Sequence record: NC_048674.1
Length of the DNA stretch: 64,000 bases
Reading direction: 5' to 3' (one strand)
Made by a program: the position numbers and the translations under genes. Below the pieces are notes generated by a model that saw nothing but the letters and a program-made list of their open reading frames with translations, was not told the origin of the DNA and made no database searches. Below are positions 2,310-48,973 of this stretch, piece after piece. Numbering within the stretch: position 1 is the stretch's first letter; every line of letters begins with the position of its first letter.

Positions 2310-3743
2310 ATGAAAGTATCAGTTAAATTCAACGACTATAGTAATGCAATTATCGAGTGTGAACGTGACATCTTCATGGAGTTGAGAGAGTATTATTCAT
2401 TTGAGACGGAAGGTGGTGCTAGATTTAATCCTAAGTTTAAATATAGCGGTTGGGATGGTCGGATCCGTCTCCTACAACCTGATGGAAAATTCCCTTATGG
2501 TCTGGTCAATAACCTTGAGAAATATTGCGCTAGAAACGAATACGAATTTGAAAAAGAAGAAGACTTTACTCCTATTAACCATTTCACATCTAGAGAAGAG
2601 TTTGATAAATGGTTGGCTGATATTGATATATATTCTGGGGGAAATAAGATTACCGCGCACTGGTATCAGGCTGATGCGGTTTATTACGCAATTCAGAATA
2701 ACCGGGGTATCTTAAACCTTCCTACGTCTGCCGGTAAATCCCTAATAGCAGCTCTTATTTGTTACTGGTATATGACTAATTATGATGGGAAAATATTGCT
2801 AATCGTTCCAACAACCTCCCTTGTTACTCAGATGATGGACGATTTCGCGGATTACCAGTTTATGAGACGGGAATTTTCTCATGGTATTATGGCTGGCAAA
2901 ACAAAAGATCACCCAGCACCAGTATTTGTTAGTACATGGCAAAGTGCATCGAAACAACCAGTTCATTGGTTCCGCCAATTTGGGGCTCTTTTGATTGATG
3001 AATGTCACAACGTAGGTAGTGAGATTAAGAATATCATCACAAACCTCTCTGAGTGCCCGTTTAAATGGGGTATGAGTGGTTCTTTGAAAGATGGTAAATG
3101 TAATATTATGTCGTATGTTGGTTTGTTTGGGGATGTATTCAAGCCGGTTAGTACTAAACAACTTATGGAAGAGGGTCAAGTAACAGATCTTAAAATAAAT
3201 AACCTGTTCTTGCGGTATCCTAAACAAGATTGTGTATTAACTAAAGGAATAGAATATCAACAAGAGATTAAATATATCGAGGAACATACAAAGAGAAATG
3301 CTTTTGTGTGTCGTTTGGCTTTAAAATTAGCCAAAGAGAAGAAAGAGAATACCTTGATACTGTTTAGGCATAAGGAACATGGGAAGAAGCTTTATGAGGC
3401 CCTTAGCAAAAAACATGACAATGTATTCTTTGCTAATGGCGATACTAACGTAGAGGAACGGGATCAGCTTAAGAAAATTGCAGAGGGTAGCGACGGGATG
3501 ATCATCGTTGCTTCTATTGGTATATTCTCAACCGGTATTTCTATCAAAAAGCTATTCCACGTTATTTTCGCGTCTCCATTTAAATCTAAGGTTACCACGT
3601 TACAGAGTATTGGTCGGGTTCTTCGAAAGCATGGAGAAAAGACTATCGCCACTCTATGGGATATCGTAGATAACCTATGTATTGAGACCAAAAATTCAAA
3701 ACCGGGCTCGGTTAAATATCAGATCAAAGAGATTGAATTGTGA
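2310..3743 (+). CDS. uvsW: UvsW SF2 DNA helicase (C-terminal segment apparently missing)
   Basis: WDGRIRL, LPTSAGKS (Walker A), IDECH (Walker B), QSIGRVLR (motif VI). Confidence 0.96.
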   Translation: MKVSVKFNDYSNAIIECERDIFMELREYYSFETEGGARFNPKFKYSGWDGRIRLLQPDGKFPYGLVNNLEKYCARNEYEFEKEEDFTPINHFTSREEFDKWLADIDIYSGGNKITAHWYQADAVYYAIQNNRGILNLPTSAGKSLIAALICYWYMTNYDGKILLIVPTTSLVTQMMDDFADYQFMRREFSHGIMAGKTKDHPAPVFVSTWQSASKQPVHWFRQFGALLIDECHNVGSEIKNIITNLSECPFKWGMSGSLKDGKCNIMSYVGLFGDVFKPVSTKQLMEEGQVTDLKINNLFLRYPKQDCVLTKGIEYQQEIKYIEEHTKRNAFVCRLALKLAKEKKENTLILFRHKEHGKKLYEALSKKHDNVFFANGDTNVEERDQLKKIAEGSDGMIIVASIGIFSTGISIKKLFHVIFASPFKSKVTTLQSIGRVLRKHGEKTIATLWDIVDNLCIETKNSKPGSVKYQIKEIEL

Positions 3744-4672
3744 AGAAAGATAATTTTGTAGGTATGGAATTCCCCACTCATAAAGGTGGGGTTCTTCGTG
3801 TAATTGGAGTTCATGAGACTGTAAATCGGGTTAAAAAATATCATGTGGAATGTAGTATTTGTTCCAAAGATAAAGAGCTTTTCCCTGATCTATTTTCTTG
3901 CACAAAAATACTTCTTACTAAGGGTGGTATGCCGTGTATGTGTTCACATAAACCGATGGTATCGGAAGAACAACGTATGTTGATTGTATCTCGGGTGTGT
4001 AACTCTTCTGGATATAAGTTTATTGGTTTTGTTGATGGATACAAAACATCTGAATCGTTGCTTAGATATGTTTGTCCATCACATGGAGTCCAAACCGTAA
4101 GATATAACTCGTTTGTAAACCGTGGTTCTAGGTGTCCGGACTGTAACGGTAACAAACGAGGAACTACTGATAAAGTTAGGACAGAAATGTCGGAATATTG
4201 TGAATCCTTGGGGTATAAGTTTGTTGATTTTGTTGGAGGTGAATACAAAAACTGCTACACCAAGTTTGAGTTTATTTGTCCAGAACATGAAACCCAATTT
4301 GGTTCTTGCTTGACATTCAAGAAAAGGAACCAGAGATGTCCTAGTTGTTCTGCTACTGGATATGATACGTCAAAACCCGGATGGTTTTATGTGTATAAAT
4401 ATAAGATGAAAGGAAAGCCTTTGATCTACAAGTATGGAATAACCAACCGAGATCCAAAGAAGAGGTCATCTGAACATACTCAAACAAAGTCCATGGAAAT
4501 ATCCGAAAACGTGTTTAAACGGTTATATGACGATGGAAACGTACCTTTCAATATAGAACAAAAAATAAAACAACAATTTTCTGGTGTGTCTGATTGGTTG
4601 TACTCTGGTAATACAGAGACTATATATGAAAGAGACTTACCAAGAGTATTATCAATTATTCAAGAGGTATAA
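3740..4672 (+). mobile_element. free-standing homing endonuclease, Zn-finger repeats plus GIY-YIG-like (T5orf172/Hef-type) C-terminal domain
   Basis: Repeated CPxH..G.RCPxC modules. C-terminal PGWFYVY..IYKYGITNRDPKKRSSEH. GTGA overlap with the uvsW stop. Confidence 0.75.
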
Positions 4673-4673
4673 A

Positions 4674-5331
4674 ATGATATATTTTGCTGATTATCTTCTC
4701 CTTCAAGAAGAGGTAGAAGAAAAAAACACCGATGGTGATGACAAGCCTGCTGTAAGTATCGAAAAGTTTTTGGGNTGTAGATAACCTATGTATTGAGACC
4801 AAAAATTCGAAACCGGGCTCGGTTAAATATGCACATAAAAATTATGCGTACAAACATGCAATGCNTGGTGAGGAAGTAGAAGACTTTTGATTTTAAAGCC
4901 CCTTCCTTTTCGGTTGGGGCTTTTCTGTTTAGAATGGGTTGTGGTTTTTACTTGGGTTTTTAAGGAACTTCTCGTAATTCTTCAACTCATCATAAACCGT
5001 TTGTGCTATGAAACCAACGCTACATTTTTCTTTTTTATAGATTGCTCCACTAACCCGAACATAACGTGACGCGGAAAACAGGGGGGCGAGANCATTGTTG
5101 TAGTGATTCATTTTATCTCTCCTTAGCGAACCATAGTTTTCATTTTCTTAACAACCACTGTAGTCTGGGTGGAAGGACCACGACGACCAGTACGGGTGAG
5201 GGNATTATAAAAGTCGAATAAAATCCGTTGCTATTTCGGATACTGATGATATTCAGATCCGTGATGCAATCGATGGTCGCCGCGAAGCCTTTAAACAAGA
5301 GGAAGGCGGTGAGGAAGTAGAAGACTTTTGA
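4674..5331 (+). CDS. uvsW.1: UvsW.1, present as two separated fragments (4674-4774 and 5204-5331)
   Basis: N-part MIYFADYLL..SIEKFLG. C-part YYKSRIKSVAISDTDDIQIRDAIDGRREAF..EEVEDF*, matching recalled T4 UvsW.1 YYKKRVKE..DTDDISVRDAL. Fragments are bounded by single Ns. Confidence 0.75.
4777..4830 (+). repeat. 54 bp direct repeat of the uvsW 3' region (3666-3719), 1 mismatch
   Basis: GTAGATAACC..GGTTAAATAT occurs at 3666 and 4777. Confidence 0.92.
5160..5202. repeat. 43 bp exact direct repeat (second copy 5765-5807)
   Basis: GTAGTCTGGGTGGAAGGACCACGACGACCAGTACGGGTGAGGG seen twice. Confidence 0.92.
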
Positions 5332-5336
5332 TTTTT

Positions 5337-5362
5337 AAAGCCCGCTTTATGCGGGCTTTTTG
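5337..5362. terminator. bidirectional terminator after uvsW.1 (variant copy at 4895-4925)
   Basis: AAAGCCCGC-TTTAT-GCGGGCTTTTT between convergent genes. Confidence 0.75.
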
Positions 5363-5679
5363 TTTTTAACGAACAGGGGGTCATAACCAGTTGGTTTCAT
5401 GAGGAATTTTTCATAATCTCTCAGAGTTTCATAGACCGACTGAGAAATGAAACCAACGCTACATTTTCCTTTTTGATAGATTGCTCCACTAACCCGAACA
5501 CAACGTGATGCGGAGAACATGTGGGCGAGATCTGGGTCTACATCATAAAGGAGAGCCAAGATGCAGTTTTGGCGGTTCTTTCCCCGTGTGTGTTCTAGAA
5601 CAAGACAATTAAGTTCTTTTCGAACTTGGTTAGTCAGTTCACGGATCTCCATCACTTGACCAAATTCACCATTTTTCAA
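5347..5679 (-). CDS. hypothetical protein (second allele fragment at 4929-5111)
   Basis: SASRCVRVSGAIYQKGKCSVGFI versus SASRYVRVSGAIYKKEKCSVGFI. True start probably lies in the N-rich region upstream. Confidence 0.65.
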   Translation of the reverse strand: MKNGEFGQVMEIRELTNQVRKELNCLVLEHTRGKNRQNCILALLYDVDPDLAHMFSASRCVRVSGAIYQKGKCSVGFISQSVYETLRDYEKFLMKPTGYDPLFVKNKKPA

Positions 5680-5751
5680 AACATCGNNATNGNGGTNACN
5701 TCANNNNANCGANCNCAGCGATTANCGGAATCNNTGCCGTTNTCGNTNNTN

Positions 5752-5955
5752 TTANCGAANNANGGTAGTCTGGGTGGAAGGACCACGACGACCAGTACGG
5801 GTGAGGGTCATNGTCTCTTTTTTCTGNGAAGGGGTAACCTCNACAGAACGAGCCCANCGATTNGCNGAATCTTTNCCGTTGTCGGTCATTTTACCGAAGG
5901 AAGCGACACGNGCNGCAGAACGAGTNGCGAAGAAAACTTGAGCGGTCATAGTCAT
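5752..5955 (-). CDS. small basic hypothetical protein (N-rich)
   Basis: SD AAGGA. MTMTAQVFFATRSAARVASFGK.. The 3' end (TQTTVVVKKMKTMVR*) is readable in the 5130-5202 copy. Confidence 0.55.
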   Translation of the reverse strand: MTMTAQVFFXTRSXXRVASFGKMTDNXKDXXNXWARSXEVTPXQKKEXMTLTRTGRRGPSTQTTXXX

Positions 5956-6056
5956 GGTTCATTTCCTTTTTTTCAGAAGAGGGACAACCCGTCCCGACAT
6001 GAGTAATATTACCAGAACTGGATTTTGGTGCAAGCGATTTTTGAAAAATAAATGCA

Positions 6057-6090
6057 AAAAATCCCAAGTGATTGATTCACTTGGGATTTT
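6057..6090 (-). terminator. terminator downstream of uvsY
   Basis: AAAATCCCAAGTG-ATTGATT-CACTTGGGATTTT. Confidence 0.75.
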
Positions 6091-6093
6091 ACT

Positions 6094-6511
6094 TTACTTT
6101 ACACCAACCATAAGGGCTTGGTGGTCAACAATCGCTCTAATACTAAATCCACGTTGTCGGATAGATTCGATTGCACCATCACAAAACTTAATCATCAGAT
6201 CCAGATAATCCAGTTTTTTTGATGACAAAAGAACTTTATCGTCCGCCGGGATGATGGTTTTTAATTCAGTTGCACTGAAATCGNAACTCGCATATATCAT
6301 CACCACGCCCAGTATTGTGCATTAGACTATCTTTCAGGATAACAACATGAGAAGAATGAATACCAATACGCTGGCGGCTTAAGTCTGCTTTGTACCGGAT
6401 CCATTTCCCATAGATTACTGGATTGTCCATAGCGGAATTTTGAATATTACCACGGTCGATAATAAGGTCTTTTTCCAATTCTGCTTGTAAGCTTTCCAAT
6501 GAGTAATCCAT
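6094..6511 (-). CDS. uvsY: UvsY recombination mediator (apparent frameshift caused by N at 6284)
   Basis: Two track ORFs join into 138 aa if N6284 is removed: LESLQAELEKD..GKW..GRGDDICEFDFSATELKT..FCDGAIESIRQRGFSI. Confidence 0.9.
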
Positions 6512-6690
6512 TACAGCATTTGCACCTCTTCAATTTTAGAACTCAAATCCGATTCGTTTAGTTTAGAGTTTTCAAATTGATCTTTGTAGTATGCATAACA
6601 CCCTTGATAATGGAGAGTACCATGGGGAGTGTCTACAGTGGTTTGATGCGATTCAATTTTTTGTTTACAAATGATACATTTCATTTTCAT
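6511..6690 (-). CDS. uvsY.-2: UvsY.-2-like small Zn-binding protein
   Basis: Hand translation MKMKCIICKQKIESHQTTVDTPHGTLHYQGCYAY.. (59 aa), TAATG coupling to uvsY. Confidence 0.75.
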   Translation of the reverse strand: MKMKCIICKQKIESHQTTVDTPHGTLHYQGCYAYYKDQFENSKLNESDLSSKIEEVQML

Positions 6691-6725
6691 ATTCCTTTCA
6701 AGTAAGGGGGAATTCCCCCTTTCCT

Positions 6726-8030
6726 TTATTTAGAGCCATCGAAGTACAAACAGAAATCTGTTGGGCGGGTCACGCCAACATAAACAAGCTGTTGCTGTAG
6801 GTCGGTATCGGCATAACTGATATCATGCAACCCAAGCCAGACACCCTTCACAGTAGATCCTTGGCTCTTATGAATGGTACATGCACCAAGAGATTTCGTT
6901 TCTGTAAATGTCTTTTTAGCATCCCAGAACGAAGCCCACGCCGCCTTAGTTTGTCCACGTTGCATTTGTTTTATAACAGCCGCTGCCTCACTGAGTTGGT
7001 AATTAAACTCGGCTTTTGAGTCTTCGCCATATACAGACATAATGTCATGGGTCACACCAGAAAAATCTGATGTTACCTTAAGCTTGGCAACTGAAATAGA
7101 AAATGCAGGGGATCCATCAATACGAATGTTCATATCAGACACTTCGATTTCATCAACAGTTACTACCTCACCATTAGTGAAGATTGTTTCTATCGTATCA
7201 TCGTCGTATTCAACCATAACCGGCTCTTGTAAAACAAGCTTCTCACCTTCGATGAATGGTAGATCTGTTTTGTATACGTGTTTTCGGACAATCGAGTTGA
7301 CTTTATCAACGACCTTGTTTGTAAATGCCAAGAACCTGTATTTGGTTAGGTCGTCCGGAGTTTTCACAACTCGGAGATATGAGTTGATCAGGTCTGTGAT
7401 ACTTTTGACTTTATACACGCCAGACTTTTTCTCTTTGTTCCAGTTCTGATAAATCCATCCACCTTCCCTGATAGTTGTTGCTACCTGAATAATCGGGTTA
7501 TCCAGAGATTGACGCATAATATCAGTCATTCGGATTTGAGTAAATCGACTATCTGTAAAATACGGACTCAATTCGCCCGGTGCGTGATCTACTGGTTGGA
7601 TCTGGTCTTTATCACCTATGGCAATAATACGACAAGTCGGAGGAATAGATTTCATCGTAATATTAAACAGGGTTTTTGAATGCATAGACGCTTCTTCGAT
7701 AATGAGATATCGAACCGTACTAAGGTCTGGCATTTTACTTTGGTCGAAGATCTGAATATCTTCAAGTGTTTCTGGGTGTATTTTCATTAGGCTATGGATT
7801 GTACAAGCCTCAATACCTGACATCTCAGTTAGAACGATTTTAGCTTGATGTGTGGGGGCAGCAAGAACCGTACCCAATTCGTCACCAAGCATTTTGATAA
7901 TATATTTTACCAAGAATGTTTTACCACTACCGGGAGGACCGGATATCGTAATATGACCAGTCCCAGATCGAACCGCATCTACCGCCATTTGTTGACTATT
8001 TGTTAGTGTTATTTCGTTCTCGTTCCTCAT
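6726..8030 (-). CDS. dda: Dda SF1B DNA helicase
   Basis: GPPGSGKT, APTHQAK, IIEEASM, GDKDQIQPV, TIHKSQGST, YVGVTRP. Confidence 0.96.
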   Translation of the reverse strand: MRNENEITLTNSQQMAVDAVRSGTGHITISGPPGSGKTFLVKYIIKMLGDELGTVLAAPTHQAKIVLTEMSGIEACTIHSLMKIHPETLEDIQIFDQSKMPDLSTVRYLIIEEASMHSKTLFNITMKSIPPTCRIIAIGDKDQIQPVDHAPGELSPYFTDSRFTQIRMTDIMRQSLDNPIIQVATTIREGGWIYQNWNKEKKSGVYKVKSITDLINSYLRVVKTPDDLTKYRFLAFTNKVVDKVNSIVRKHVYKTDLPFIEGEKLVLQEPVMVEYDDDTIETIFTNGEVVTVDEIEVSDMNIRIDGSPAFSISVAKLKVTSDFSGVTHDIMSVYGEDSKAEFNYQLSEAAAVIKQMQRGQTKAAWASFWDAKKTFTETKSLGACTIHKSQGSTVKGVWLGLHDISYADTDLQQQLVYVGVTRPTDFCLYFDGSK

Positions 8031-8616
8031 TATTTTCCTTCTCTCTAACTTGTGCTATCAATTTTTCATGTAATTGTGTAGCTGCTTCTTTGACATTATC
8101 TGGCAACCCCTTCATATCGTAACAAAGTTCTCGACCCCAATCCCATCCCAAAGTATATGCGATAGATTGTTGAATATTTTTGTTCCCATAAGGTCGTTTT
8201 GCCTCACTAAGGAATACAGACAGTTTACCATCATAATGCGAGTCTTTGTATTCTTCTTCATGGAAGAAATAAGACCCAATCATATTAAGGCGGTCAAGCT
8301 CACAATATTCCGGTTGACGACGGCGCATTACCTCATCCCAGTATTCTTCTCTGGTCATACCATACTTATTACGATATTCACAATCATAAATTTCGATAAG
8401 GGACGATTTAATATCACCATAAGAGAAAAAAGGTGAACCGAACTGGGTGGTATGCCAATCTCCAAAAACGTCTTGGATATTATAGATCCTACCAAAGTCC
8501 TCGTCATAATCTACTTCAAATTCTCGAAACCAGAACAAAATCCCTTTGAGATAAGGATGTTTACTGATGAAATTGTTAAATGATTCTTCGTCTTTGAATT
8601 TAAATTTACGAGTCAT
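7996..8616 (-). CDS. hypothetical protein
   Basis: 206 aa ORF. N-terminal domain resembles 53412 and 53684. Confidence 0.7.
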   Translation of the reverse strand: MTRKFKFKDEESFNNFISKHPYLKGILFWFREFEVDYDEDFGRIYNIQDVFGDWHTTQFGSPFFSYGDIKSSLIEIYDCEYRNKYGMTREEYWDEVMRRRQPEYCELDRLNMIGSYFFHEEEYKDSHYDGKLSVFLSEAKRPYGNKNIQQSIAYTLGWDWGRELCYDMKGLPDNVKEAATQLHEKLIAQVREKENNEERERNNTNK

Positions 8617-40193: not shown

Positions 40194-41717
40194 GTGATGA
40201 ATTTTTATACAAGTGTTTGGCTAGATGGAAATACCATTTACGACCGATATTTCGATGATAACGGTAATGATAAGATCCGAAAGGTTAGATATGAACCAAC
40301 TATGTATCGTCATGTTGGTGACCATATTGATACTCCATATCGGGATATTTTCGGTAAGCGTTGTTTGCCTAAGAAACTAGATTCTGTTAGCGAAGCTAGG
40401 AAATGGTTTAAAGATATGCAGTCTATGGGAAAAGACGTATTGGGTATGGATAATTACACATTCCAATATATTTCTGATACTTATGGTTCTAATGTGTATT
40501 ATGATTATACATATCTTGATATTATGTTTTTGGATATTGAAGTCCCAACCGATGGACCTTTTCCCCAAGCAGAAGAAACGAAGTATGAAATAGATACTAT
40601 TCAGATCTATAGCACCAAATCAAAAAAATATTATATCTGGACTATTCGAGAATGGGATGCATGTAAATCTATTCTAGATAAAAAAGTTCTTGATGATGTA
40701 GAATATGTTTTGTGTGGGTCTGAAAAAGAAATCCTGATTAAGTTCATGCACTTTTTCTGTACGAATACACCCCATTATCTTAGTGGGTGGAATAGTGAGT
40801 TTTTTGATATTCCCTATATCATGGGTCGTATTAAAAAAGTCCTTGGTGAAAAATTTATCCATAAACTGAGTCCATTTGGTGAGACTACAGAGATCACCCA
40901 AAAGGATGACAACGACGAAGATTACACCACCTACACTATCCAAGGTGTAAACTGTGTTGACTTCATGGCAGCATATAAGAAGTTTACTTTTACCACACGA
41001 CCAAACTATAAACTAGATACGATTGCGGAAGCAGAACTTAAAACAAATAAAGTCGAAATGACTTATAAAACCTACTTGATGTTTGCTGAAAAGGATCCAC
41101 AGACTTATATCGATTACTCTATTCGAGACGTTGAAATTATCAAACGACTGGAAGAAACATTGAGTTTGATATTCCTGATTGCGTCTGTATCCTATTATGC
41201 GAGTATCAACGCACCAGACGTATTCAGTCCGTTGAAAACTTGGGATGCTATCATTTATAACAGCCTCCTTGCCAATAACGTAATTATCCCTGAAAACAAA
41301 CATGCCCAACGGTCTAAGTTCGCTGGCGCATATGTTAAGGACCCGATTCCGGGGTTGTATGAGTGGCTTATTTCGTTTGACTTGACTTCCCTTTATCCAC
41401 ACGAAATCATGGGTAAGAATATCTCTCCCGAGACTTTGGTTGATCAGGTTGATTTCCCTCGTATCTTGGTTAAAGACCGTATGGTTCCTGATATCGAGGG
41501 TATGGGTTTGGTTAACAAGACGTTTGATGTTCCTCATGAAGGTAAATATTCCGTCGCCCCAAATGGTGTTCGTTATAGAAATGACAAACGCGGTTTCCTT
41601 CCTATTGAAGTTGAGAAGGTGTTTGTCCAACGGAAACAAGCCAAGACCGAAGAGTTTAAAGCTGATGCCCTTGCAACTAGAGCTGCTGCAATCTTGGCAA
41701 AGAGGAATGATAAATGA
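40194..41717 (+). CDS. 43A: DNA polymerase, N-terminal subunit (exonuclease + palm motif A)
   Basis: FLDIEV, GWNSEFFDIPY, YSIRDV, SFDLTSLYP. Ends in the fingers. Confidence 0.95.
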   Translation: MMNFYTSVWLDGNTIYDRYFDDNGNDKIRKVRYEPTMYRHVGDHIDTPYRDIFGKRCLPKKLDSVSEARKWFKDMQSMGKDVLGMDNYTFQYISDTYGSNVYYDYTYLDIMFLDIEVPTDGPFPQAEETKYEIDTIQIYSTKSKKYYIWTIREWDACKSILDKKVLDDVEYVLCGSEKEILIKFMHFFCTNTPHYLSGWNSEFFDIPYIMGRIKKVLGEKFIHKLSPFGETTEITQKDDNDEDYTTYTIQGVNCVDFMAAYKKFTFTTRPNYKLDTIAEAELKTNKVEMTYKTYLMFAEKDPQTYIDYSIRDVEIIKRLEETLSLIFLIASVSYYASINAPDVFSPLKTWDAIIYNSLLANNVIIPENKHAQRSKFAGAYVKDPIPGLYEWLISFDLTSLYPHEIMGKNISPETLVDQVDFPRILVKDRMVPDIEGMGLVNKTFDVPHEGKYSVAPNGVRYRNDKRGFLPIEVEKVFVQRKQAKTEEFKADALATRAAAILAKRNDK

Positions 41718-42889
41718 ATCTAGATTATACCGATGAACAATTGGAAAATATGACAGACGATGAGCTGAAAAAGCTCATCTCTGACTGTCGGAAATATGAG
41801 AAAGTATGTAACGTAACCCAACAAGCAAAAAAGGTATTGATCAACTCTCTTTATGGGTCTTTGGGTCATCCTGTGGGTCGTTATTATGATCTACGAATGG
41901 CAGAATCAATTACGATGGGTGGTCAGTTATCCATTAAATGGATTGCCAGAAAAACGAACGAGTATTTCAATAAGCTGTGTAACACAGAAGACGTAGATTA
42001 CGTTATCTATTGTGATACCGACTCTCAATATGTTTGTGTTGAAAACTTCGTTAAAATGATGGCAGACAAGAAAGGCGTTAAGATTGAGGATGTTGAACCT
42101 ATTAAATGGGTTGATATGCTTGATAAGTTCGCAAAGAATATGGTCGAGCCATATATCGATGAATGTTATCGCGAACTGAAAGATTACATGAACTATTTCG
42201 ACCATAAATTGTTCATGGACCGTGAAGTAATCGCAACTCGTGGGTTTTGGACCGCTAAGAAACGATATGCTCTATCTGTGTGGGATAACGAAGGTAAGAG
42301 AAAGCTAGACTCTCATGGTAATGTAGTTCCAAAGCTCAAGATTATGGGTATCGAGACACGCCGTAGCAGTACACCACCTTTTGCGTCAGAATGCCTTGAA
42401 AAAGCGATTGACATCATTTTGACTGAGAATGAAACAAATCTCCATGCTCACGTTGACAAGGTAAAGGGTGAATATCCAAAACAGGATTATCGTAAGATTG
42501 CACAAGTAAGTAGCGCAAATAATATTGAAAAGAACTCAGACGAATTTTTCAATCATAAATCTGGTTGTCCCGGTCACGTTAAAGCAGCTATTAACTACAA
42601 CAAGATTTGTGATCAGTTGAAATCAGTATCCTACGTTGACCCAATCCGTTCCGGTGAAAAAATTCAGTATGCGATGTTGAAGGTCCCGAATAAATATCAT
42701 ATCGAAACTATTGCTTGGCCTTCCGGTGATAAGATCCCAGACGAATTCGGAATTAATCCGGAAAAAGATATTGATTTCGTTGGTATGTATTGTAAACACT
42801 TCCAAAAGCCGCTTGGTAATATCTGCGATGCTATTGGGTGGAAACAAGAAAGCCCCGCGAATTTTTCTCTGGATGACTTGTTTGGTTGA
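41714..42889 (+). CDS. 43B: DNA polymerase, C-terminal subunit
   Basis: KVLINSLYGSLG (motif B), YCDTDS (motif C), KKRYAL, clamp-binding tail SLDDLFG. Confidence 0.95.
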   Translation: MNLDYTDEQLENMTDDELKKLISDCRKYEKVCNVTQQAKKVLINSLYGSLGHPVGRYYDLRMAESITMGGQLSIKWIARKTNEYFNKLCNTEDVDYVIYCDTDSQYVCVENFVKMMADKKGVKIEDVEPIKWVDMLDKFAKNMVEPYIDECYRELKDYMNYFDHKLFMDREVIATRGFWTAKKRYALSVWDNEGKRKLDSHGNVVPKLKIMGIETRRSSTPPFASECLEKAIDIILTENETNLHAHVDKVKGEYPKQDYRKIAQVSSANNIEKNSDEFFNHKSGCPGHVKAAINYNKICDQLKSVSYVDPIRSGEKIQYAMLKVPNKYHIETIAWPSGDKIPDEFGINPEKDIDFVGMYCKHFQKPLGNICDAIGWKQESPANFSLDDLFG

Positions 42890-42980: not shown

Positions 42981-44090
42981 ATGGCTAAAAAAGCAAAAAC
43001 GGTTAATACTGGTGCCCTTCTGGAACGTCTGTCTGGTACTTCCTCAAATAAAATGAGTTCTATGCTATCCGATAGCGTTTTCTTTAACGACAAGGATGTA
43101 ATTCGGACTCGGGTCCCGATCATTAACCTGATGTTGAGTGGTCATCTTGATGGTGGTTTGAAGCCGGGTCTAACTTGTATTGCCGGACCGTCTAAACACT
43201 TTAAATCTAACCTGAGTTTGGTTCTGGTTTCTGCTTATCTTCGTAAGTATCCGGATGCAGTTTGTCTGTTCTTTGATAATGAATTCGGTTCTACTCCTGA
43301 TTATTTTACTTCTCAAGGTGTAGATATTGACCGGGTTGTACATTGTCCGTTTATTGACGTAGAAGAACTTAAATTCGATATCGTTAAGAAACTGGAAGCT
43401 GTCAAACGTGGTGATAAGGTTATTATCTATATTGACTCTATCGGTAACGTTGCTTCTAAGAAAGAACTTGAAGATGCGAAGAATGAAAAGTCTGCACAGG
43501 ATATGACCCGAGCAAAGCAGATCAAGAGTCTGTTCCGTATGGTTACCCCTTACCTGACTGTTAATGACATTCCGTGTATTGCTGTAAACCACACATACGA
43601 AACCCAAGAGATGTACAGCAAAACTGTTATGAGTGGCGGCACCGGACCGATGTATTCCGCTGACACCGTTATCATTCTTGGTAAGCAACAGGACAAAGAT
43701 GGCAAAGAGCTGTTGGGTTATAACTTTGTGATGAATGCGGAAAAGAGTCGCACTATCAAAGAAAAATCCAAATTGGACTTGCAAGTTTCCTTCCAAGGTG
43801 GTATTAATACATACTCAGGTTTGCTAAAGATTGCACAAGAACTTGGTTTTGTTACCAAACCACAAAACGCACGTTATCAGCGCAATTATCTCGACCTCGA
43901 AACTGGTGAGATGTATCTGATCACTGACGATGAAAAGAAATGGACAGAAGAGGATTCCAACTCTCTGGAATTCTGGAAACCTATGTTTTCTCACAAGCCT
44001 TTTATGGATGCTGTGTCTGATGCATACAAACTGAAAGCAGTTGAAGTATCTCAGGAAGTGTTTGATGAAGTTGACCAGTTGTTCGGTTAA
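42981..44090 (+). CDS. uvsX: UvsX RecA-like recombinase
   Basis: AGPSKHFKS, FFDNEFG, IDSIGN, NHTYET, MSGGTG. Confidence 0.97.
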   Translation: MAKKAKTVNTGALLERLSGTSSNKMSSMLSDSVFFNDKDVIRTRVPIINLMLSGHLDGGLKPGLTCIAGPSKHFKSNLSLVLVSAYLRKYPDAVCLFFDNEFGSTPDYFTSQGVDIDRVVHCPFIDVEELKFDIVKKLEAVKRGDKVIIYIDSIGNVASKKELEDAKNEKSAQDMTRAKQIKSLFRMVTPYLTVNDIPCIAVNHTYETQEMYSKTVMSGGTGPMYSADTVIILGKQQDKDGKELLGYNFVMNAEKSRTIKEKSKLDLQVSFQGGINTYSGLLKIAQELGFVTKPQNARYQRNYLDLETGEMYLITDDEKKWTEEDSNSLEFWKPMFSHKPFMDAVSDAYKLKAVEVSQEVFDEVDQLFG

Positions 44091-44899: not shown

Positions 44900-44940
44900 C
44901 AATGACCTAGGAAACTAGGTCTATTTCTTACAGGTAATAT

Positions 44941-45231
44941 ATGGAAGAAATAAACGAAGATACCTATAAAGATGTAATCAATGACGCATTAAAGAATGTA
45001 CAAACCGAATTGGTTATCCGGATTGATAGTGAGAATTTTCTTGTGTTTATCAACGATATACAGTATCATGATGGAAAGGTTGTATTAGATTGGAGTACTC
45101 CACATGAAGACATGAAGGAAGAACTATATCCACATGTTAAAAATGCAGTACAAGCCATGTATAACCAAACCAATGTTGAGATTGAAAAATCTTTCTTTGG
45201 GCGTTTTCTTGATCTTTTCAAAAGGAAATAA
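44941..45231 (+). CDS. 40: head vertex assembly chaperone gp40
   Basis: NVQTELVI..DGKVVLDW..ELYPHV, synteny uvsX-40-41. Confidence 0.9.
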   Translation: MEEINEDTYKDVINDALKNVQTELVIRIDSENFLVFINDIQYHDGKVVLDWSTPHEDMKEELYPHVKNAVQAMYNQTNVEIEKSFFGRFLDLFKRK

Positions 45232-45232
45232 A

Positions 45233-45748
45233 ATGACAGAACAAACCTGCGACCGTAATGATTGTTATGATGTAACTGGATTTCCAGAGGATACCCTTGT
45301 TACCTTTTGTGCCCCCGACATTTACGGGGACATGAGGGAACAAACATGGACTCTATATCAACTCCTAGAGATTCAACAGGGTAACCGGATCCTTCTAAAG
45401 GGACCGGAAACCGGTAAATACGCAACGATCTTACGTATGGTCGATACGGAGTTCACAGAACCGGTCAACCCCAACGTATGGGAAATCCATATGTCTAACG
45501 GGAAATCTTGGTTGTGTGCAGAGAACCATCAAGTTCTGAGTCTATATGACCGCAAGAGCCCCTATCAGGCGCTATATGCAGCTCAATATTGTACTCCTGA
45601 TGGTGGTGTTGTGAACCGGGTAAAAAGGGTTCGTCAATACAAATATAAGGCTAGGTTCTGGATGCATATCATCACTGAGGACGATGTACCGTTCGTGCTG
45701 AATGATACCGGTATTCTTCATTTTTCCTCACAGAAAAAGGTTGTATAA
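45233..45748 (+). CDS. free-standing Hint (intein-like) domain protein
   Basis: Block A-like GFPEDTLV, block B-like WEIHMSNGKSWLCAENHQVL, block F/G-like HIITEDDVPFVLNDTGILHF. Confidence 0.7.
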   Translation: MTEQTCDRNDCYDVTGFPEDTLVTFCAPDIYGDMREQTWTLYQLLEIQQGNRILLKGPETGKYATILRMVDTEFTEPVNPNVWEIHMSNGKSWLCAENHQVLSLYDRKSPYQALYAAQYCTPDGGVVNRVKRVRQYKYKARFWMHIITEDDVPFVLNDTGILHFSSQKKVV

Positions 45749-45755
45749 ATAATTA

Positions 45756-45801
45756 AAAAGTCGCTTACGTTATGGGATAATCTTTAACGTAAGCGACTTT
45801 T
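45756..45801. terminator. 17 bp perfect inverted repeat between the Hint gene and gene 41
   Basis: AAAAGTCGCTTACGTTA-12nt-TAACGTAAGCGACTTTT then U-rich. TATAAATA at 45744-45751 immediately upstream. Confidence 0.7.
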
Positions 45802-45820
45802 CTTTTTACAGGTGTTTTTA

Positions 45821-47383
45821 ATGAGTATTTCACAAATTATTATCAATAACCTCGTTTTCAACGGCGAGTATTTTGGTAAGGTGTACCCTTTTCTTAAATC
45901 CGAATATTTCTCTAAGGGACCTTATCGTATTGCATTTGACTTGATTGATACATATGCAAAAAAGCATAACAAAGCTCCATCGGTTGCGGCTCTGGATGTT
46001 ATGCTGGAACGCAAACAGAATATGAGTCAAGTAGAGTATGACCAGACTAAAGTTTTGGTATCTCGAATTGAACAAATCCCAGAAGATAAAAACTGGTTGA
46101 TTGAAGAGACAGAATCTTTCTGTAAAGAACGTGCTATCGATATTGCATTATCTGAGTGTATCCAGATCCGTGAAAACTTCGCCAAACCACTGGATGAGCA
46201 AGACCCGAAAATAAAAGATATCGGGGCAATGCAAGAGATCATGAAAAAGGCTATGTCTGTTGGCTTTACTTTTGACGTTGGTCATGATTATATGAACAGC
46301 GCAGAAGAACGTTGGGAAGCATATAACCAAAAGACAAATAAGATCCCGTTCCTGAATCATATGCTGAACCGGATCACCAAGGGTGGGGTTGAACGTGGTA
46401 CGCTTAACGTTATTCTAGCCGGTACTGGTGTTGGTAAGTCTATCGGTCTGTGTCACCTTGCAACCGAGTATATGCAACTCGGGTTAAACGTGTTGTACGT
46501 CTCGTTTGAGATGTCGGAAGAAACTGTAGGTAAGCGTATTGACGCAAACCTAATGGACCTGACTCTGGACGAGCTAGATAGTGGACTTATCCAAAAATCT
46601 GAGTTCATGAACCGGTTCAACAAAAAGGTTGCAGGTAAAAAGCTTGGTAAGCTTTATGTTAAGCAGTTCCCAACATCAGGGGCAAACGTAAACCACATCA
46701 GAAACCTGATGGATGAGCTTGAAATGAAAAAGGGTTTCAAGCCAGATGTTATCATGGTAGACTACCTAGGTATCATGGCTTCGTCCCGTATGAAGTTCTC
46801 TGATAACTCTTACTCTTTCATCAAGGCAATTTCAGAAGAAGTTCGTGGACTTGCTATCGAGAAGAAAATTGTTGCTTGGTCTGGTGCACAAACCAACCGT
46901 GGGTCTTCTGGTTCCCTTGAGATTGACAAAGCTGATATTGCGGATTCTTATGCACTTCTTCATGGTTGCGACTTCGTATTGGCAATTTCAGAAGATGAGG
47001 ATCTGGTGCAGATGGGACAACAGTTGTTCAAGCAACTTAAATCTCGTTATGGTGATATCAACACCCATAATAAATTCTGTATGGTTGTAGAAAAAGCTAA
47101 AATGCGTTGGTCGGATCTCGACGACACAACACCATATACTGTTGTATTCGAAAGAAAGGATCTGGAAGAACGTTCTGATATTCAAGACGATGCAGTTATT
47201 GTTCGTCGTGGTGATGAAATTACTTCTGTTCCGGTTGAAGTTACTCCGGAAGTTGTTGATGAAATTGATACTACTCCGATGGGTAGTTCTATGTTCAAAC
47301 GCCGTATGAGCAAAACCGAAGTTGATTTTAACGACCTTCTGGCAGAACAAACACAAGAAGACGATGTACCTTGGGATAACTAA
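45821..47383 (+). CDS. 41: replicative helicase gp41, no intein
   Basis: AGTGVGKS, SFEMSE, VDYLGI, AQTNR, QLKSRYGD. Confidence 0.97.
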   Translation: MSISQIIINNLVFNGEYFGKVYPFLKSEYFSKGPYRIAFDLIDTYAKKHNKAPSVAALDVMLERKQNMSQVEYDQTKVLVSRIEQIPEDKNWLIEETESFCKERAIDIALSECIQIRENFAKPLDEQDPKIKDIGAMQEIMKKAMSVGFTFDVGHDYMNSAEERWEAYNQKTNKIPFLNHMLNRITKGGVERGTLNVILAGTGVGKSIGLCHLATEYMQLGLNVLYVSFEMSEETVGKRIDANLMDLTLDELDSGLIQKSEFMNRFNKKVAGKKLGKLYVKQFPTSGANVNHIRNLMDELEMKKGFKPDVIMVDYLGIMASSRMKFSDNSYSFIKAISEEVRGLAIEKKIVAWSGAQTNRGSSGSLEIDKADIADSYALLHGCDFVLAISEDEDLVQMGQQLFKQLKSRYGDINTHNKFCMVVEKAKMRWSDLDDTTPYTVVFERKDLEERSDIQDDAVIVRRGDEITSVPVEVTPEVVDEIDTTPMGSSMFKRRMSKTEVDFNDLLAEQTQEDDVPWDN

Positions 47384-47410
47384 ATAAAAGGATACCAAGG
47401 AGGATTTAAC

Positions 47411-47860
47411 GTGAGTATTAAAACTATTATGGACGGGATTTATTCCGTCCGTATGCTAGACCTATTAAGAAAACCATTTCGTAATTGGGAAGCATACAAG
47501 CGCGGTATTATCGACGAAGCCGGTGAGTTTATTAAGAAGCCGGAAACCGTGAGAGAAAAAGCGGCGTATACATCATTTCACGCAGCAATTAGATCACTGA
47601 AAATAAACCTTCAAAAGTATGGGGGTGAGTCGGTATCTAAATCGTTGGCGGTGAAGGCTGGATATGACACTTTAACAGAATCATATGGTCAATCAGAATA
47701 CACGATTGAAATGTTGTATGAAGAGATGATCGCTGGTGATTCCGGGGGTAATGTGACAAACATCGCAACCGGGGTAAAATCTGGTTCTGTTACAGATAAA
47801 GGTCCGACTGTCATGGGGAAGAAAAAAGATCGTCGTAAAATTGAAGTAAAAGCCCCGTAA
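47411..47860 (+). CDS. 61.1: gp61.1-like protein
   Basis: YSVRMLDLLRKPF..W.AYK.GIID..G, EEMIAGDSGG. Confidence 0.85.
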   Translation: MSIKTIMDGIYSVRMLDLLRKPFRNWEAYKRGIIDEAGEFIKKPETVREKAAYTSFHAAIRSLKINLQKYGGESVSKSLAVKAGYDTLTESYGQSEYTIEMLYEEMIAGDSGGNVTNIATGVKSGSVTDKGPTVMGKKKDRRKIEVKAP

Positions 47861-47917: not shown

Positions 47918-48973
47918 ATGAACATAATTTATATCGAACGACAGTTTGCAACTAGACTTAGTTACCGGATGGAATTGTGCACAGATCATTCCCGTGGTGT
48001 TGAGGTAAAGTATAATTTCCGTTGTCCTATATGTGGTGATAGTAAAACTGACTACAGTAAAACCCGTGGGTGGTTATACGAATCAGAGGGTCATGTTCGG
48101 TTTGGTTGCTTTAACTGCAACGTTAATATGAAGCTATCCAACTACCTTTATGATAATGAACCTGAAATGTATAGAGAATTTGCAAAGGAAAAATTTGCAA
48201 ACAAAGACGATAGTGAATGGTTCGAAACTAAAAAAACTGTAGAAAAACCAGTTGAACTAATCACAAAGAGTGTGATACCATATTCAACTTGTATAGAGGA
48301 TCTCCCAGAGAATCATCCCGCCGTGAAATGGGTTGCGGCTCGTAAAATCCCAAAACATCAATACAAACTGTTCTTCTTTACTGCGGATTGGAAGAAGGTT
48401 GCTAATAGTGTTAAGCCAGAAACCTATCTGTATGATGATAAGAAAGAATATCGATTGGTTATCCCGATCTATAACAAAGATGGAACATATTCATCTTTGC
48501 AGGGTCGAGCATTAGATCCAAACGTTGATAAAAGTAGACGATATTTGACTATCAAGGCTGATGACAAAGCGTCTAAAGTATATGGTATGGAACGTGTGGA
48601 TCCATCAAAGACAGTTTGGATGTTGGAAGGACCAATAGACAGCGTGTTTATACCTAATGCATGTGCTATCGTCGGTGGTGTTATGGCTCTTGAAGATGCA
48701 CCATTCCCTGATAAACGGGTATGGGTACTTGATAAAGAGGGTCGATCCTTCGACACACTAAAACGGATCGAAAATCTGATCAAAGCCGGTGAAAAGGTTG
48801 TCATCTGGGATGAATGTCCGTGGTCTTCCAAGGATATCAACGATTTCATAAAAAATGATGGCGCTACCATTGATGAAGTGGTACAATATCTGAAAGACCA
48901 CACATATAGTGGTTTGAGAGCTGAACTTGCACTTAGCAAGTGGCGTAAATTTGGACATAAGAGGATTTCGTGA
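47918..48973 (+). CDS. 61: DNA primase gp61
   Basis: NFRCPICGDS..CFNC Zn finger, QGRAL, LEGPIDSVF, KDIND. Confidence 0.96.
   Translation: MNIIYIERQFATRLSYRMELCTDHSRGVEVKYNFRCPICGDSKTDYSKTRGWLYESEGHVRFGCFNCNVNMKLSNYLYDNEPEMYREFAKEKFANKDDSEWFETKKTVEKPVELITKSVIPYSTCIEDLPENHPAVKWVAARKIPKHQYKLFFFTADWKKVANSVKPETYLYDDKKEYRLVIPIYNKDGTYSSLQGRALDPNVDKSRRYLTIKADDKASKVYGMERVDPSKTVWMLEGPIDSVFIPNACAIVGGVMALEDAPFPDKRVWVLDKEGRSFDTLKRIENLIKAGEKVVIWDECPWSSKDINDFIKNDGATIDEVVQYLKDHTYSGLRAELALSKWRKFGHKRIS

Follow-up and report, generated by a model that had tools for sequence, protein, structure and literature searches.

A stand-alone Hint-fold gene with no predicted splicing activity between genes 40 and 41 of CC2-like Aeromonas phages

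Inteins are usually viewed as selfish elements, which persist by splicing or decay, and some of them (classes 2 and 3) exist without the cysteine at position 1 (Cys1). The classic domesticated intein is the yeast HO endonuclease, a free-standing and non-splicing protein which was co-opted to serve its host; HO keeps its LAGLIDADG endonuclease domain as this function, whereas the phage protein considered here is predicted to be a bare Hint domain with no nuclease. The Hint fold has also been put to non-intein uses in BIL domains, such as those of Clostridium thermocellum (2lwy) and Tetrahymena BUBL BIL2 (6tmm), but such domains belong to larger proteins and have retained the N-terminal Cys or Ser with which they cleave or ligate, while the phage protein stands alone and has no such residue. 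Of the published inactive inteins that stand alone, the one most like the phage protein is Arth_1007 of Arthrobacter sp. FB24, an intein of the phage DnaB type with 66 aa of exteins in total, which does not splice and was called a pseudogene (PMC3196547). Arth_1007 resembles the phage protein in having almost no exteins and in having lost the essential catalytic residues; however, it is a decaying single copy without the block B His, while the phage family keeps this His, spans genera and is under purifying selection.

Nearer at hand are the inteins in the P-loop of the gp41 helicase (in P0008, P0009, P0013 and Vibrio phage vB_VmeM-32), which come from the same phage subfamily and from the gene next door, and with which the whole domain of the phage protein is collinear. 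Their size is 135–148 aa, compared with 149 aa for the domain of the phage protein. These inteins are in-frame inserts of gp41 whose first residue is Cys and which close with His-Asn before Thr, whereas the phage protein has no exteins, a Gly at position 1 and no terminal Asn. Relatives of the vB_VmeM-32 intein in the protein collection comprised three gp41 proteins with contiguous inteins of 135–148 aa at the same site and three further IntC-gp41C fragments, and the viral contig scans gave no relatives of it. Another likeness is to the gp41-1 intein (PDB 6qaz/6riz), which has the same fold, an aligned block B His and the best sequence match.

The window, i.e., the whole stretch of 64,000 nucleotides of NC_048674.1 that was analysed, is 98.5–100% identical to CC2/AS-zj-like Aeromonas phages (Straboviridae, Emmerichvirinae, Ceceduovirus). 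The gene in question, hereafter the Hint gene, is located at 45233–45748 on the plus strand and encodes 171 aa from an ATG start to a stop codon. It is labelled as a hypothetical protein in CC2/AS-zj-like phages, its homologues include CC2 244 and 65p014 of Aeromonas phage 65, and over its full length it corresponds to PHROG 16672 (E 2e-104), a family with the label "unknown function" on which no paper was found in the literature. Upstream on the same strand lies gene 40 (44941–45231), which encodes a head vertex assembly chaperone of 96 aa (Pfam PF11113, E 1e-17; PHROG 999) and whose stop codon ends 1 nt 5' of the Hint gene ATG. Downstream, gene 41 (45821–47383, plus strand) encodes a DnaB-type replicative helicase of 520 aa, identified by a Pfam DnaB_C match only, and it is intact, with an uninterrupted P-loop and without an intein. 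As for the wider neighborhood, Pfam and PHROGs identified UvsX at 42981–44090, followed by two small ORFs before gene 40, as well as the primase gp61 at 47918–48973, and a gp61.1-like ORF comes directly after gp41.

Both expression signals that had been proposed for the Hint gene, a Shine-Dalgarno sequence and a strong hairpin downstream, were recovered. On direct reading of the sequence, an AGGA motif (45223–45226, plus strand) is placed 6 nt 5' of the ATG, and an intrinsic-terminator-like hairpin with a U tract occupies 45756–45811 on the plus strand, with a perfect 17-bp stem at 45756–45801 (−25.3 kcal/mol, z −6.1), which none of 200 shuffled sequences could equal in folding. A second terminator-like hairpin, bidirectional and with a 7-bp stem (44904–44921, both strands), is found at the left edge of the gp40 + Hint pair, between an ORF of 143 aa (PHROG 20104) and gene 40, so the pair is bracketed by two hairpins. 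A match to the T4 late promoter consensus TATAAATA overlaps the stop codon, but it was discounted, since the window has 5 such matches where chance alone would give 5.5.

The Hint gene is a genuine gene, conserved in 21 phage records and four metagenomic lineages, with a single copy per phage record. A full HMMER search of 1.84 billion representative proteins retrieved only four clusters, all of 163–174 aa, to which word-indexed searches added close variants, while viral contig scans yielded no further members. Eight distinct family sequences were obtained, including that of Aeromonas phage 65 (65p014); all are stand-alone, their lengths are 163–175 aa, and the other seven are 80, 62, 54, 36, 32, 29 and 21% identical to the window protein. 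Seven columns are invariant across the family (G16, G32, E73, H99, G124, T148 and H163). The order gp40, Hint gene, hairpin and gp41 is kept at all seven loci for which DNA is available, down to 21% identity, and at all of these the Hint start codon lies 1–5 nt 3' of the gp40 stop, and 54–75 nt separate the Hint gene from gp41. In every relative, a GC-rich stem-loop stands between the Hint gene and gp41, most with a U tract, and the stems are unrelated in sequence. The gene is missing from the gp40–gp41 interval in Aeromonas phages Aeh1 and phiAS5 and in Vibrio phage vB_VmeM-32, where gp40 abuts gp41.

The Hint gene is probably co-translated with gp40. A gp40–Hint fusion by read-through or frameshift was also considered and rejected, as the frame relation varies among relatives (gaps of 1, 1, 1, 2, 3, 3 and 5 nt), and so was the idea that the Hint gene is a detached C-terminus of gp40, since gp40 itself spans positions 14–105 of the 107 in the PHROG 999 profile. 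Two irregular records were noted among the relatives. An apparent 40-aa insertion in the copy of AsSzw2 (MN871441.1, 'UNVERIFIED_ORG'; locus L004, 3001–3640) is a run of N in the assembly. In Aeromonas phage AP1 (MT713136.1, 254,490 bp), the match to the polymerase gene 43B (66849–67955) is about 40 kb away from the Hint gene (108384–108896), compared with about 3 kb in the other phages; the AP1 record is about 24 kb longer than its relatives and may be rearranged or misassembled.

A Hint fold was supported by structure prediction. A first AF2 run, on four close sequences, yielded a model of poor quality (pLDDT 47), while an alignment of seven sequences, including three distant members, raised the pLDDT to 85.5 with a pTM of 0.80 (five models, 81.9–85.5), and the fold assignment is a prediction from this seven-sequence alignment. 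A Foldseek comparison with known Hint structures had been set beforehand as the check, and the predicted fold was indeed Hint. There were 33 PDB matches at E ≤ 0.001, all of them inteins, BIL domains or Hedgehog autoprocessing domains, and the best 50 matches listed all belong to the Hint superfamily. The top match was 6tmm, the Tetrahymena BUBL BIL2 domain (E 1.8e-5), and the highest target-normalised TM was that of the VidaL intein 6vgv (0.76, rmsd 3.1), with the gp41-1 intein at 0.70–0.72 to the AF2 model. Other matches were the class 3 DnaB, Npu DnaE, Ssp DnaB, RadA, PolII and TFIIB inteins, as well as the Clostridium thermocellum BIL domain and a Hedgehog autoprocessing domain. In BFVD, the best match was an independent model of the identical CC2 protein (TM 0.89), and terminases, polymerases, DnaB helicases, ribonucleotide reductases and other large, intein-sized proteins of phages made up most of the rest. 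There were also a few small Hint-like ORFs that stand alone (A0A8S5P792, a 'Hint module' of 144 aa; A0A1S5RCV4, 143 aa; A0A2Z3EFP0, 172 aa), which are similar in size and fold (TM 0.5–0.66) but 6–13% identical to the Hint protein, and some of them may be split-intein halves or gene-calling fragments. The prediction of a complete, horseshoe-like, all-beta Hint fold for the Hint protein is solid.

In the model, the Hint domain proper covers residues 16–164 (45278–45724, plus strand), and its length of 149 aa and the spacing of 64 residues between its two invariant His fit mini-inteins. Gly16 (45278–45280) takes intein position 1, His99 (45527–45529) takes the position of the block B His, and His163 (45719–45721) is at or beside the penultimate His of block G. 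The domain is preceded by a leader of 15 residues (1–15; 45233–45277, plus strand), of which residues 1–10 have low model confidence and whose conservation is limited to the CC2 group, and it is followed by a tail of seven residues (165–171; 45725–45745, plus strand) ending in low model confidence. Both are short and weakly conserved, with low confidence at their outer ends, and they are not exteins.

Support from sequence comparison was faint but consistent, and no sequence search reached significance on its own. The window protein as a single query had no Pfam match at E ≤ 10, and single-sequence searches of NCBIfam, PDB and PADLOC gave nothing useful, with no match to the NCBIfam intein models. 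Pfam Intein_splicing (PF14890) aligned to the block B region of two family members with E values of 0.04 and 0.14, the best member scoring 14.1 bits, under the curated cut-off of 35.8. When the family profile was compared with 177,635 PDB sequences, the three best matches were all inteins (two gp41-1 entries, E 0.09 and 0.11, and a DnaE intein, E 0.34), and all were aligned at the block B strand and its His. Profiles of the N-terminal 45 residues and of the C-terminal at least 44 residues had only chance matches in PDB (xylanase, DnaK).

A further comparison was made with seven gp41 P-loop inteins, of which the contiguous ones were cut out as they stand and the split pieces were compared separately. 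With hhalign, the family aligned to them collinearly, residues 17–165 against intein positions 2–135 (score 23.6, P 0.0046), which pairs G16 with Cys1 and H99 with the block B His. At the C-terminus, the register may be off by one residue, and H163 corresponds to the penultimate His or to the His just before it. Column permutations of the inteins scored 12.5 on average (sd 2.8), and 2 of 149 reached the real score. Against the single vB_VmeM-32 IntC sequence, hhalign gave an E of 0.14, and the identity of the Hint protein to the gp41 P-loop inteins is about 12–17%. The original prediction had read intein-like blocks from four strings within the 171-aa ORF, and these strings are present at residues 16–23, 62–72, 84–102 and 145–164. 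As intein blocks they fared unequally: block B has sequence statistics behind it, while A and F/G are supported by the fold and the collinear alignment, and not by motif matches.

The catalytic equipment of an intein is largely gone from the family, much as had been predicted. G16, which lies opposite Cys1 of the gp41 inteins, is invariant, so a Cys, Ser or Thr nucleophile occurs at position 1 in no family member, and residues 13–17 hold no conserved Cys, Ser or Thr. At the other end, the eight members have F, V, Y, G or A as residue 164 and S (in six of them), P or A as residue 165; an Asn, Gln or Asp is found at neither position in any member, in agreement with the claimed loss of the terminal Asn. 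The family also has no Cys in residues 128–171, and hence none at block F position 4, which belongs to the Trp-Cys-Thr signature of class 3; this bears out the claim that the class 3 route is closed. The block B His is retained as the invariant H99, while the Thr three residues before it has been replaced by A, C, P or S. One claim did not hold: the block B His was said to be the only catalytic residue remaining, but H99 of block B and H163 of block G are both invariant, as are E73 and T148.

An in-frame host protein with N- and C-exteins is lacking too, given the leader of 15 aa and the tail of 7 aa only; all eight members are stand-alone and the gp41 P-loop is uninterrupted, as the prediction of no exteins and an intact gene 41 had stated. 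The Hint protein is not a split-intein half because the fold and the profile alignment cover both Hint halves and there is one copy per genome, nor does it correspond to a BIL domain, as it comes from a phage, stands alone and has Gly at position 1. Judged from the sequence, canonical and class 3 splicing can be considered excluded, because a position-1 nucleophile, a terminal Asn, a block F Cys and exteins are all absent, and no autoprocessing by the Hint protein is predicted. The description as free-standing and splicing-dead is supported by the stand-alone state of all eight members together with Gly at position 1 and the lack of a junction Asn and of a block F Cys.

The Hint gene is under purifying selection overall, and it evolves far faster than its neighbors. 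Its reading frame is intact in all eight lineages, down to 21% identity. In comparison with CC2, 11 codons differ, all 11 of them synonymously and none non-synonymously, and dN/dS is 0.105 in comparison with the allele of a metagenomic phage (L013). The Hint protein is 34% identical to that of phage 65, whereas gp41 and UvsX are 86–90% and gp40 is 54% identical. The dS of the Hint gene against L013 is 1.39, compared with 0.06–0.24 for gp40, UvsX and gp41, and the DNA identity falls to 45–83% from about 45250 to about 45730, with 95–100% on both flanks, which forms a sharply bounded island of divergence. The Hint gene has been exchanged as an allele between otherwise near-identical phages. Amino-acid changes are unevenly spread over this allele pair, with 38 synonymous-only and nine amino-acid-changing codons among codons 67–171, and 12 and 25, respectively, among codons 24–66; the latter form a hypervariable patch (45302–45430, plus strand) with a nucleotide identity of 45–58%. 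The GC content of the Hint gene is 0.44–0.45, like that of core genes, and does not mark it as foreign in origin, so the idea of a recent import was dropped. As to charge, the Hint protein is acidic overall (pI about 5.5) and has a single conserved basic strand-loop (residues 126–142), and its acidity argues against general nucleic-acid or DNA binding.

It had been left open beforehand whether the gene is a relic or domesticated, and retention between genes 40 and 41 under purifying selection had been named as a check. Since the Hint gene is under such selection (11 to 0 codon changes against CC2; dN/dS 0.105 against L013), "domesticated" fits and "relic" does not. With moderate confidence, we regard the Hint gene as encoding an exapted, non-catalytic Hint protein which is kept by the phage as a functional small protein. 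It would consist of a complete Hint domain of mini-intein size (residues 16–164) with a 15-aa leader and a 7-aa tail, would have none of the known intein routes to splicing or self-cleavage open to it, and would most likely descend from a mini-intein of the kind living in replication genes of the same phage subfamily. We infer this intein ancestry with the gp41 P-loop inteins of that subfamily as the nearest candidates, and the intein source cannot be fixed because the identity is 12–17%. The gene would be translated second in a gp40 + Hint pair, which the terminator-like hairpin would close before gene 41. The protein may then bind, in a putative non-catalytic manner, via the region of the former active site (H99, H163, E73 and T148) and the fast-evolving surface residues 24–66, with a putative partner that may be encoded next door (gp40 or gp41) or belong to the host or a competitor; that it acts by binding at all, and what it binds, are our guesses. 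The two His, the Glu and the Thr kept round the old active site could also mean residual or new chemistry, and not pure binding. More tentatively still, and at rather low confidence, the bare Hint domain might have become the phage's own protein through repurposing of the His99/His163/Glu73/Thr148 cluster, be it for peptide or metal binding or for new chemistry, with a hypervariable face tracking a fast-evolving partner.

Other explanations of the locus were weighed against this reading. The likeness to inteins might be a prediction artefact, or a convergent beta-fold with no intein descent, as all whole-database sequence E values exceed 0.01, the AF2 alignment is only seven sequences deep and the model from four sequences was poor (pLDDT 47). 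Such an origin is very improbable, since two independent models agree (TM 0.89), the best 50 PDB fold matches listed come from one superfamily, the best of 177,635 PDB sequences are inteins at the expected block, the collinear whole-domain profile alignment beats 147 of 149 permutations, and the 149-aa domain and the 64-residue His–His spacing fit mini-inteins. Hardly more credible is an active autoprocessing module, which would splice or cleave in a non-canonical way, or act in trans together with a second gene of the same genome. The invariance of H99 and H163 at former catalytic positions, the Ser165 of six of the eight members and the existence of inteins lacking Cys1 (classes 2 and 3) speak for it, but residues 13–17 offer no conserved Cys, Ser or Thr, the terminal Asn, Gln or Asp and the block F Cys are absent, both Hint halves are present in the one copy of each genome, and the leader and tail of 15 and 7 residues are poorly conserved.

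The view of the gene as a neutral relic, i.e., a functionless, decaying intein pseudogene left after loss or replacement of its host gene, like Arthrobacter Arth_1007, draws on the lost catalytic residues, on an evolution much faster than that of the neighbors (34% identity to phage 65 against 86–90% for gp41 and UvsX) and on the published precedent of an inactive intein with tiny exteins (PMC3196547). It is largely refuted, and we give it very little credence, by the frame that is intact in eight of eight lineages, by the codon changes (11 synonymous and none non-synonymous against CC2; 38 to nine in codons 67–171 against L013; dN/dS 0.105), by the conserved coupling to the gp40 stop and the conserved downstream hairpin, and by a GC content like that of core genes. 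The hypervariable patch and the divergence island between near-identical phages are as expected of a conflict gene, and split inteins, accompanied by homing endonuclease genes, occur in gp41 and UvsX within the same phage subfamily; both points are compatible with the suggestion, made beforehand, of a decoy or inhibitor that acts on inteins of the host or of competing phages. Such a role is unlikely, though slightly less so than the relic, because a complete folded Hint domain would, by our reasoning, leave no half-site free to receive an IntN or IntC fragment, and PADLOC gave no match.

If the bare Hint domain has indeed been repurposed in the more tentative way described above, it would be a first case in a phage of exaptation of the splicing domain itself, beside a classic intein-host helicase gene. 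A Hint domain without splicing and without a host protein, yet under purifying selection across phage genera, would be evidence for recruitment of the splicing fold, and the uncharacterised PHROG 16672 would gain a fold and an origin. The evolutionary state of the gene is unusual. Moreover, both states would be present in one subfamily, with live split inteins in gp41 and UvsX of one phage and a domesticated Hint protein beside an intact gp41 in others.

The phage with split inteins is Vibrio phage vB_VmeM-32 (Emmerichvirinae; locus L012, KU160494.1 62500–71100), in which gp41 is fractured by an atypically split P-loop intein. Its IntN is about 27 aa and its IntC 117 aa, ending in His-His-Asn before Thr; a free-standing endonuclease-like gene of 378 aa lies between the two gp41 pieces, both of which are unannotated in the GenBank record (KU160494.1). 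A split intein, together with a SegG-like gene, also breaks up UvsX in this phage, and the ORFs of the fractured gp41/UvsX region, in the coordinates of that locus, are 5472–6170, 4233–5369, 3095–4261, 6505–7056, 7164–7565 and 7558–8472, all on the minus strand. For the DNA polymerase of this phage, the annotation gives at least four separate pieces, among which homing-endonuclease-like genes are scattered (L011, KU160494.1 68594–75133, reverse complement). In P0008, a metagenomic gp41 homologue of 616 aa, an apparent second intein start was observed near the C-terminal end, where it is cut off by the end of the contig.

The window also has a split DNA polymerase, with 43A at 40194–41717 (507 codons from the GTG at 40194) and 43B at 41714–42889 (391 aa), which share 4 nt where the stop codon of 43A meets the start codon of 43B; the 43A/43B split shows no detectable parts of an intein. 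The same split is annotated in phage 65, and Aswh_1 has an extra ORF of 81 aa at the junction. At the 3' side of gp41, only 27 nt lie between gp41 and the next ORF in the window (47383–47411), as in CC2. At this spot, AS-zj (L001, 8189–9130) and L013 (7189–8130) carry a gene of 313 aa with CapR and DUF723 domains, which is possibly a mobile gene of the endonuclease type and represents a presence/absence polymorphism adjoining gene 41.
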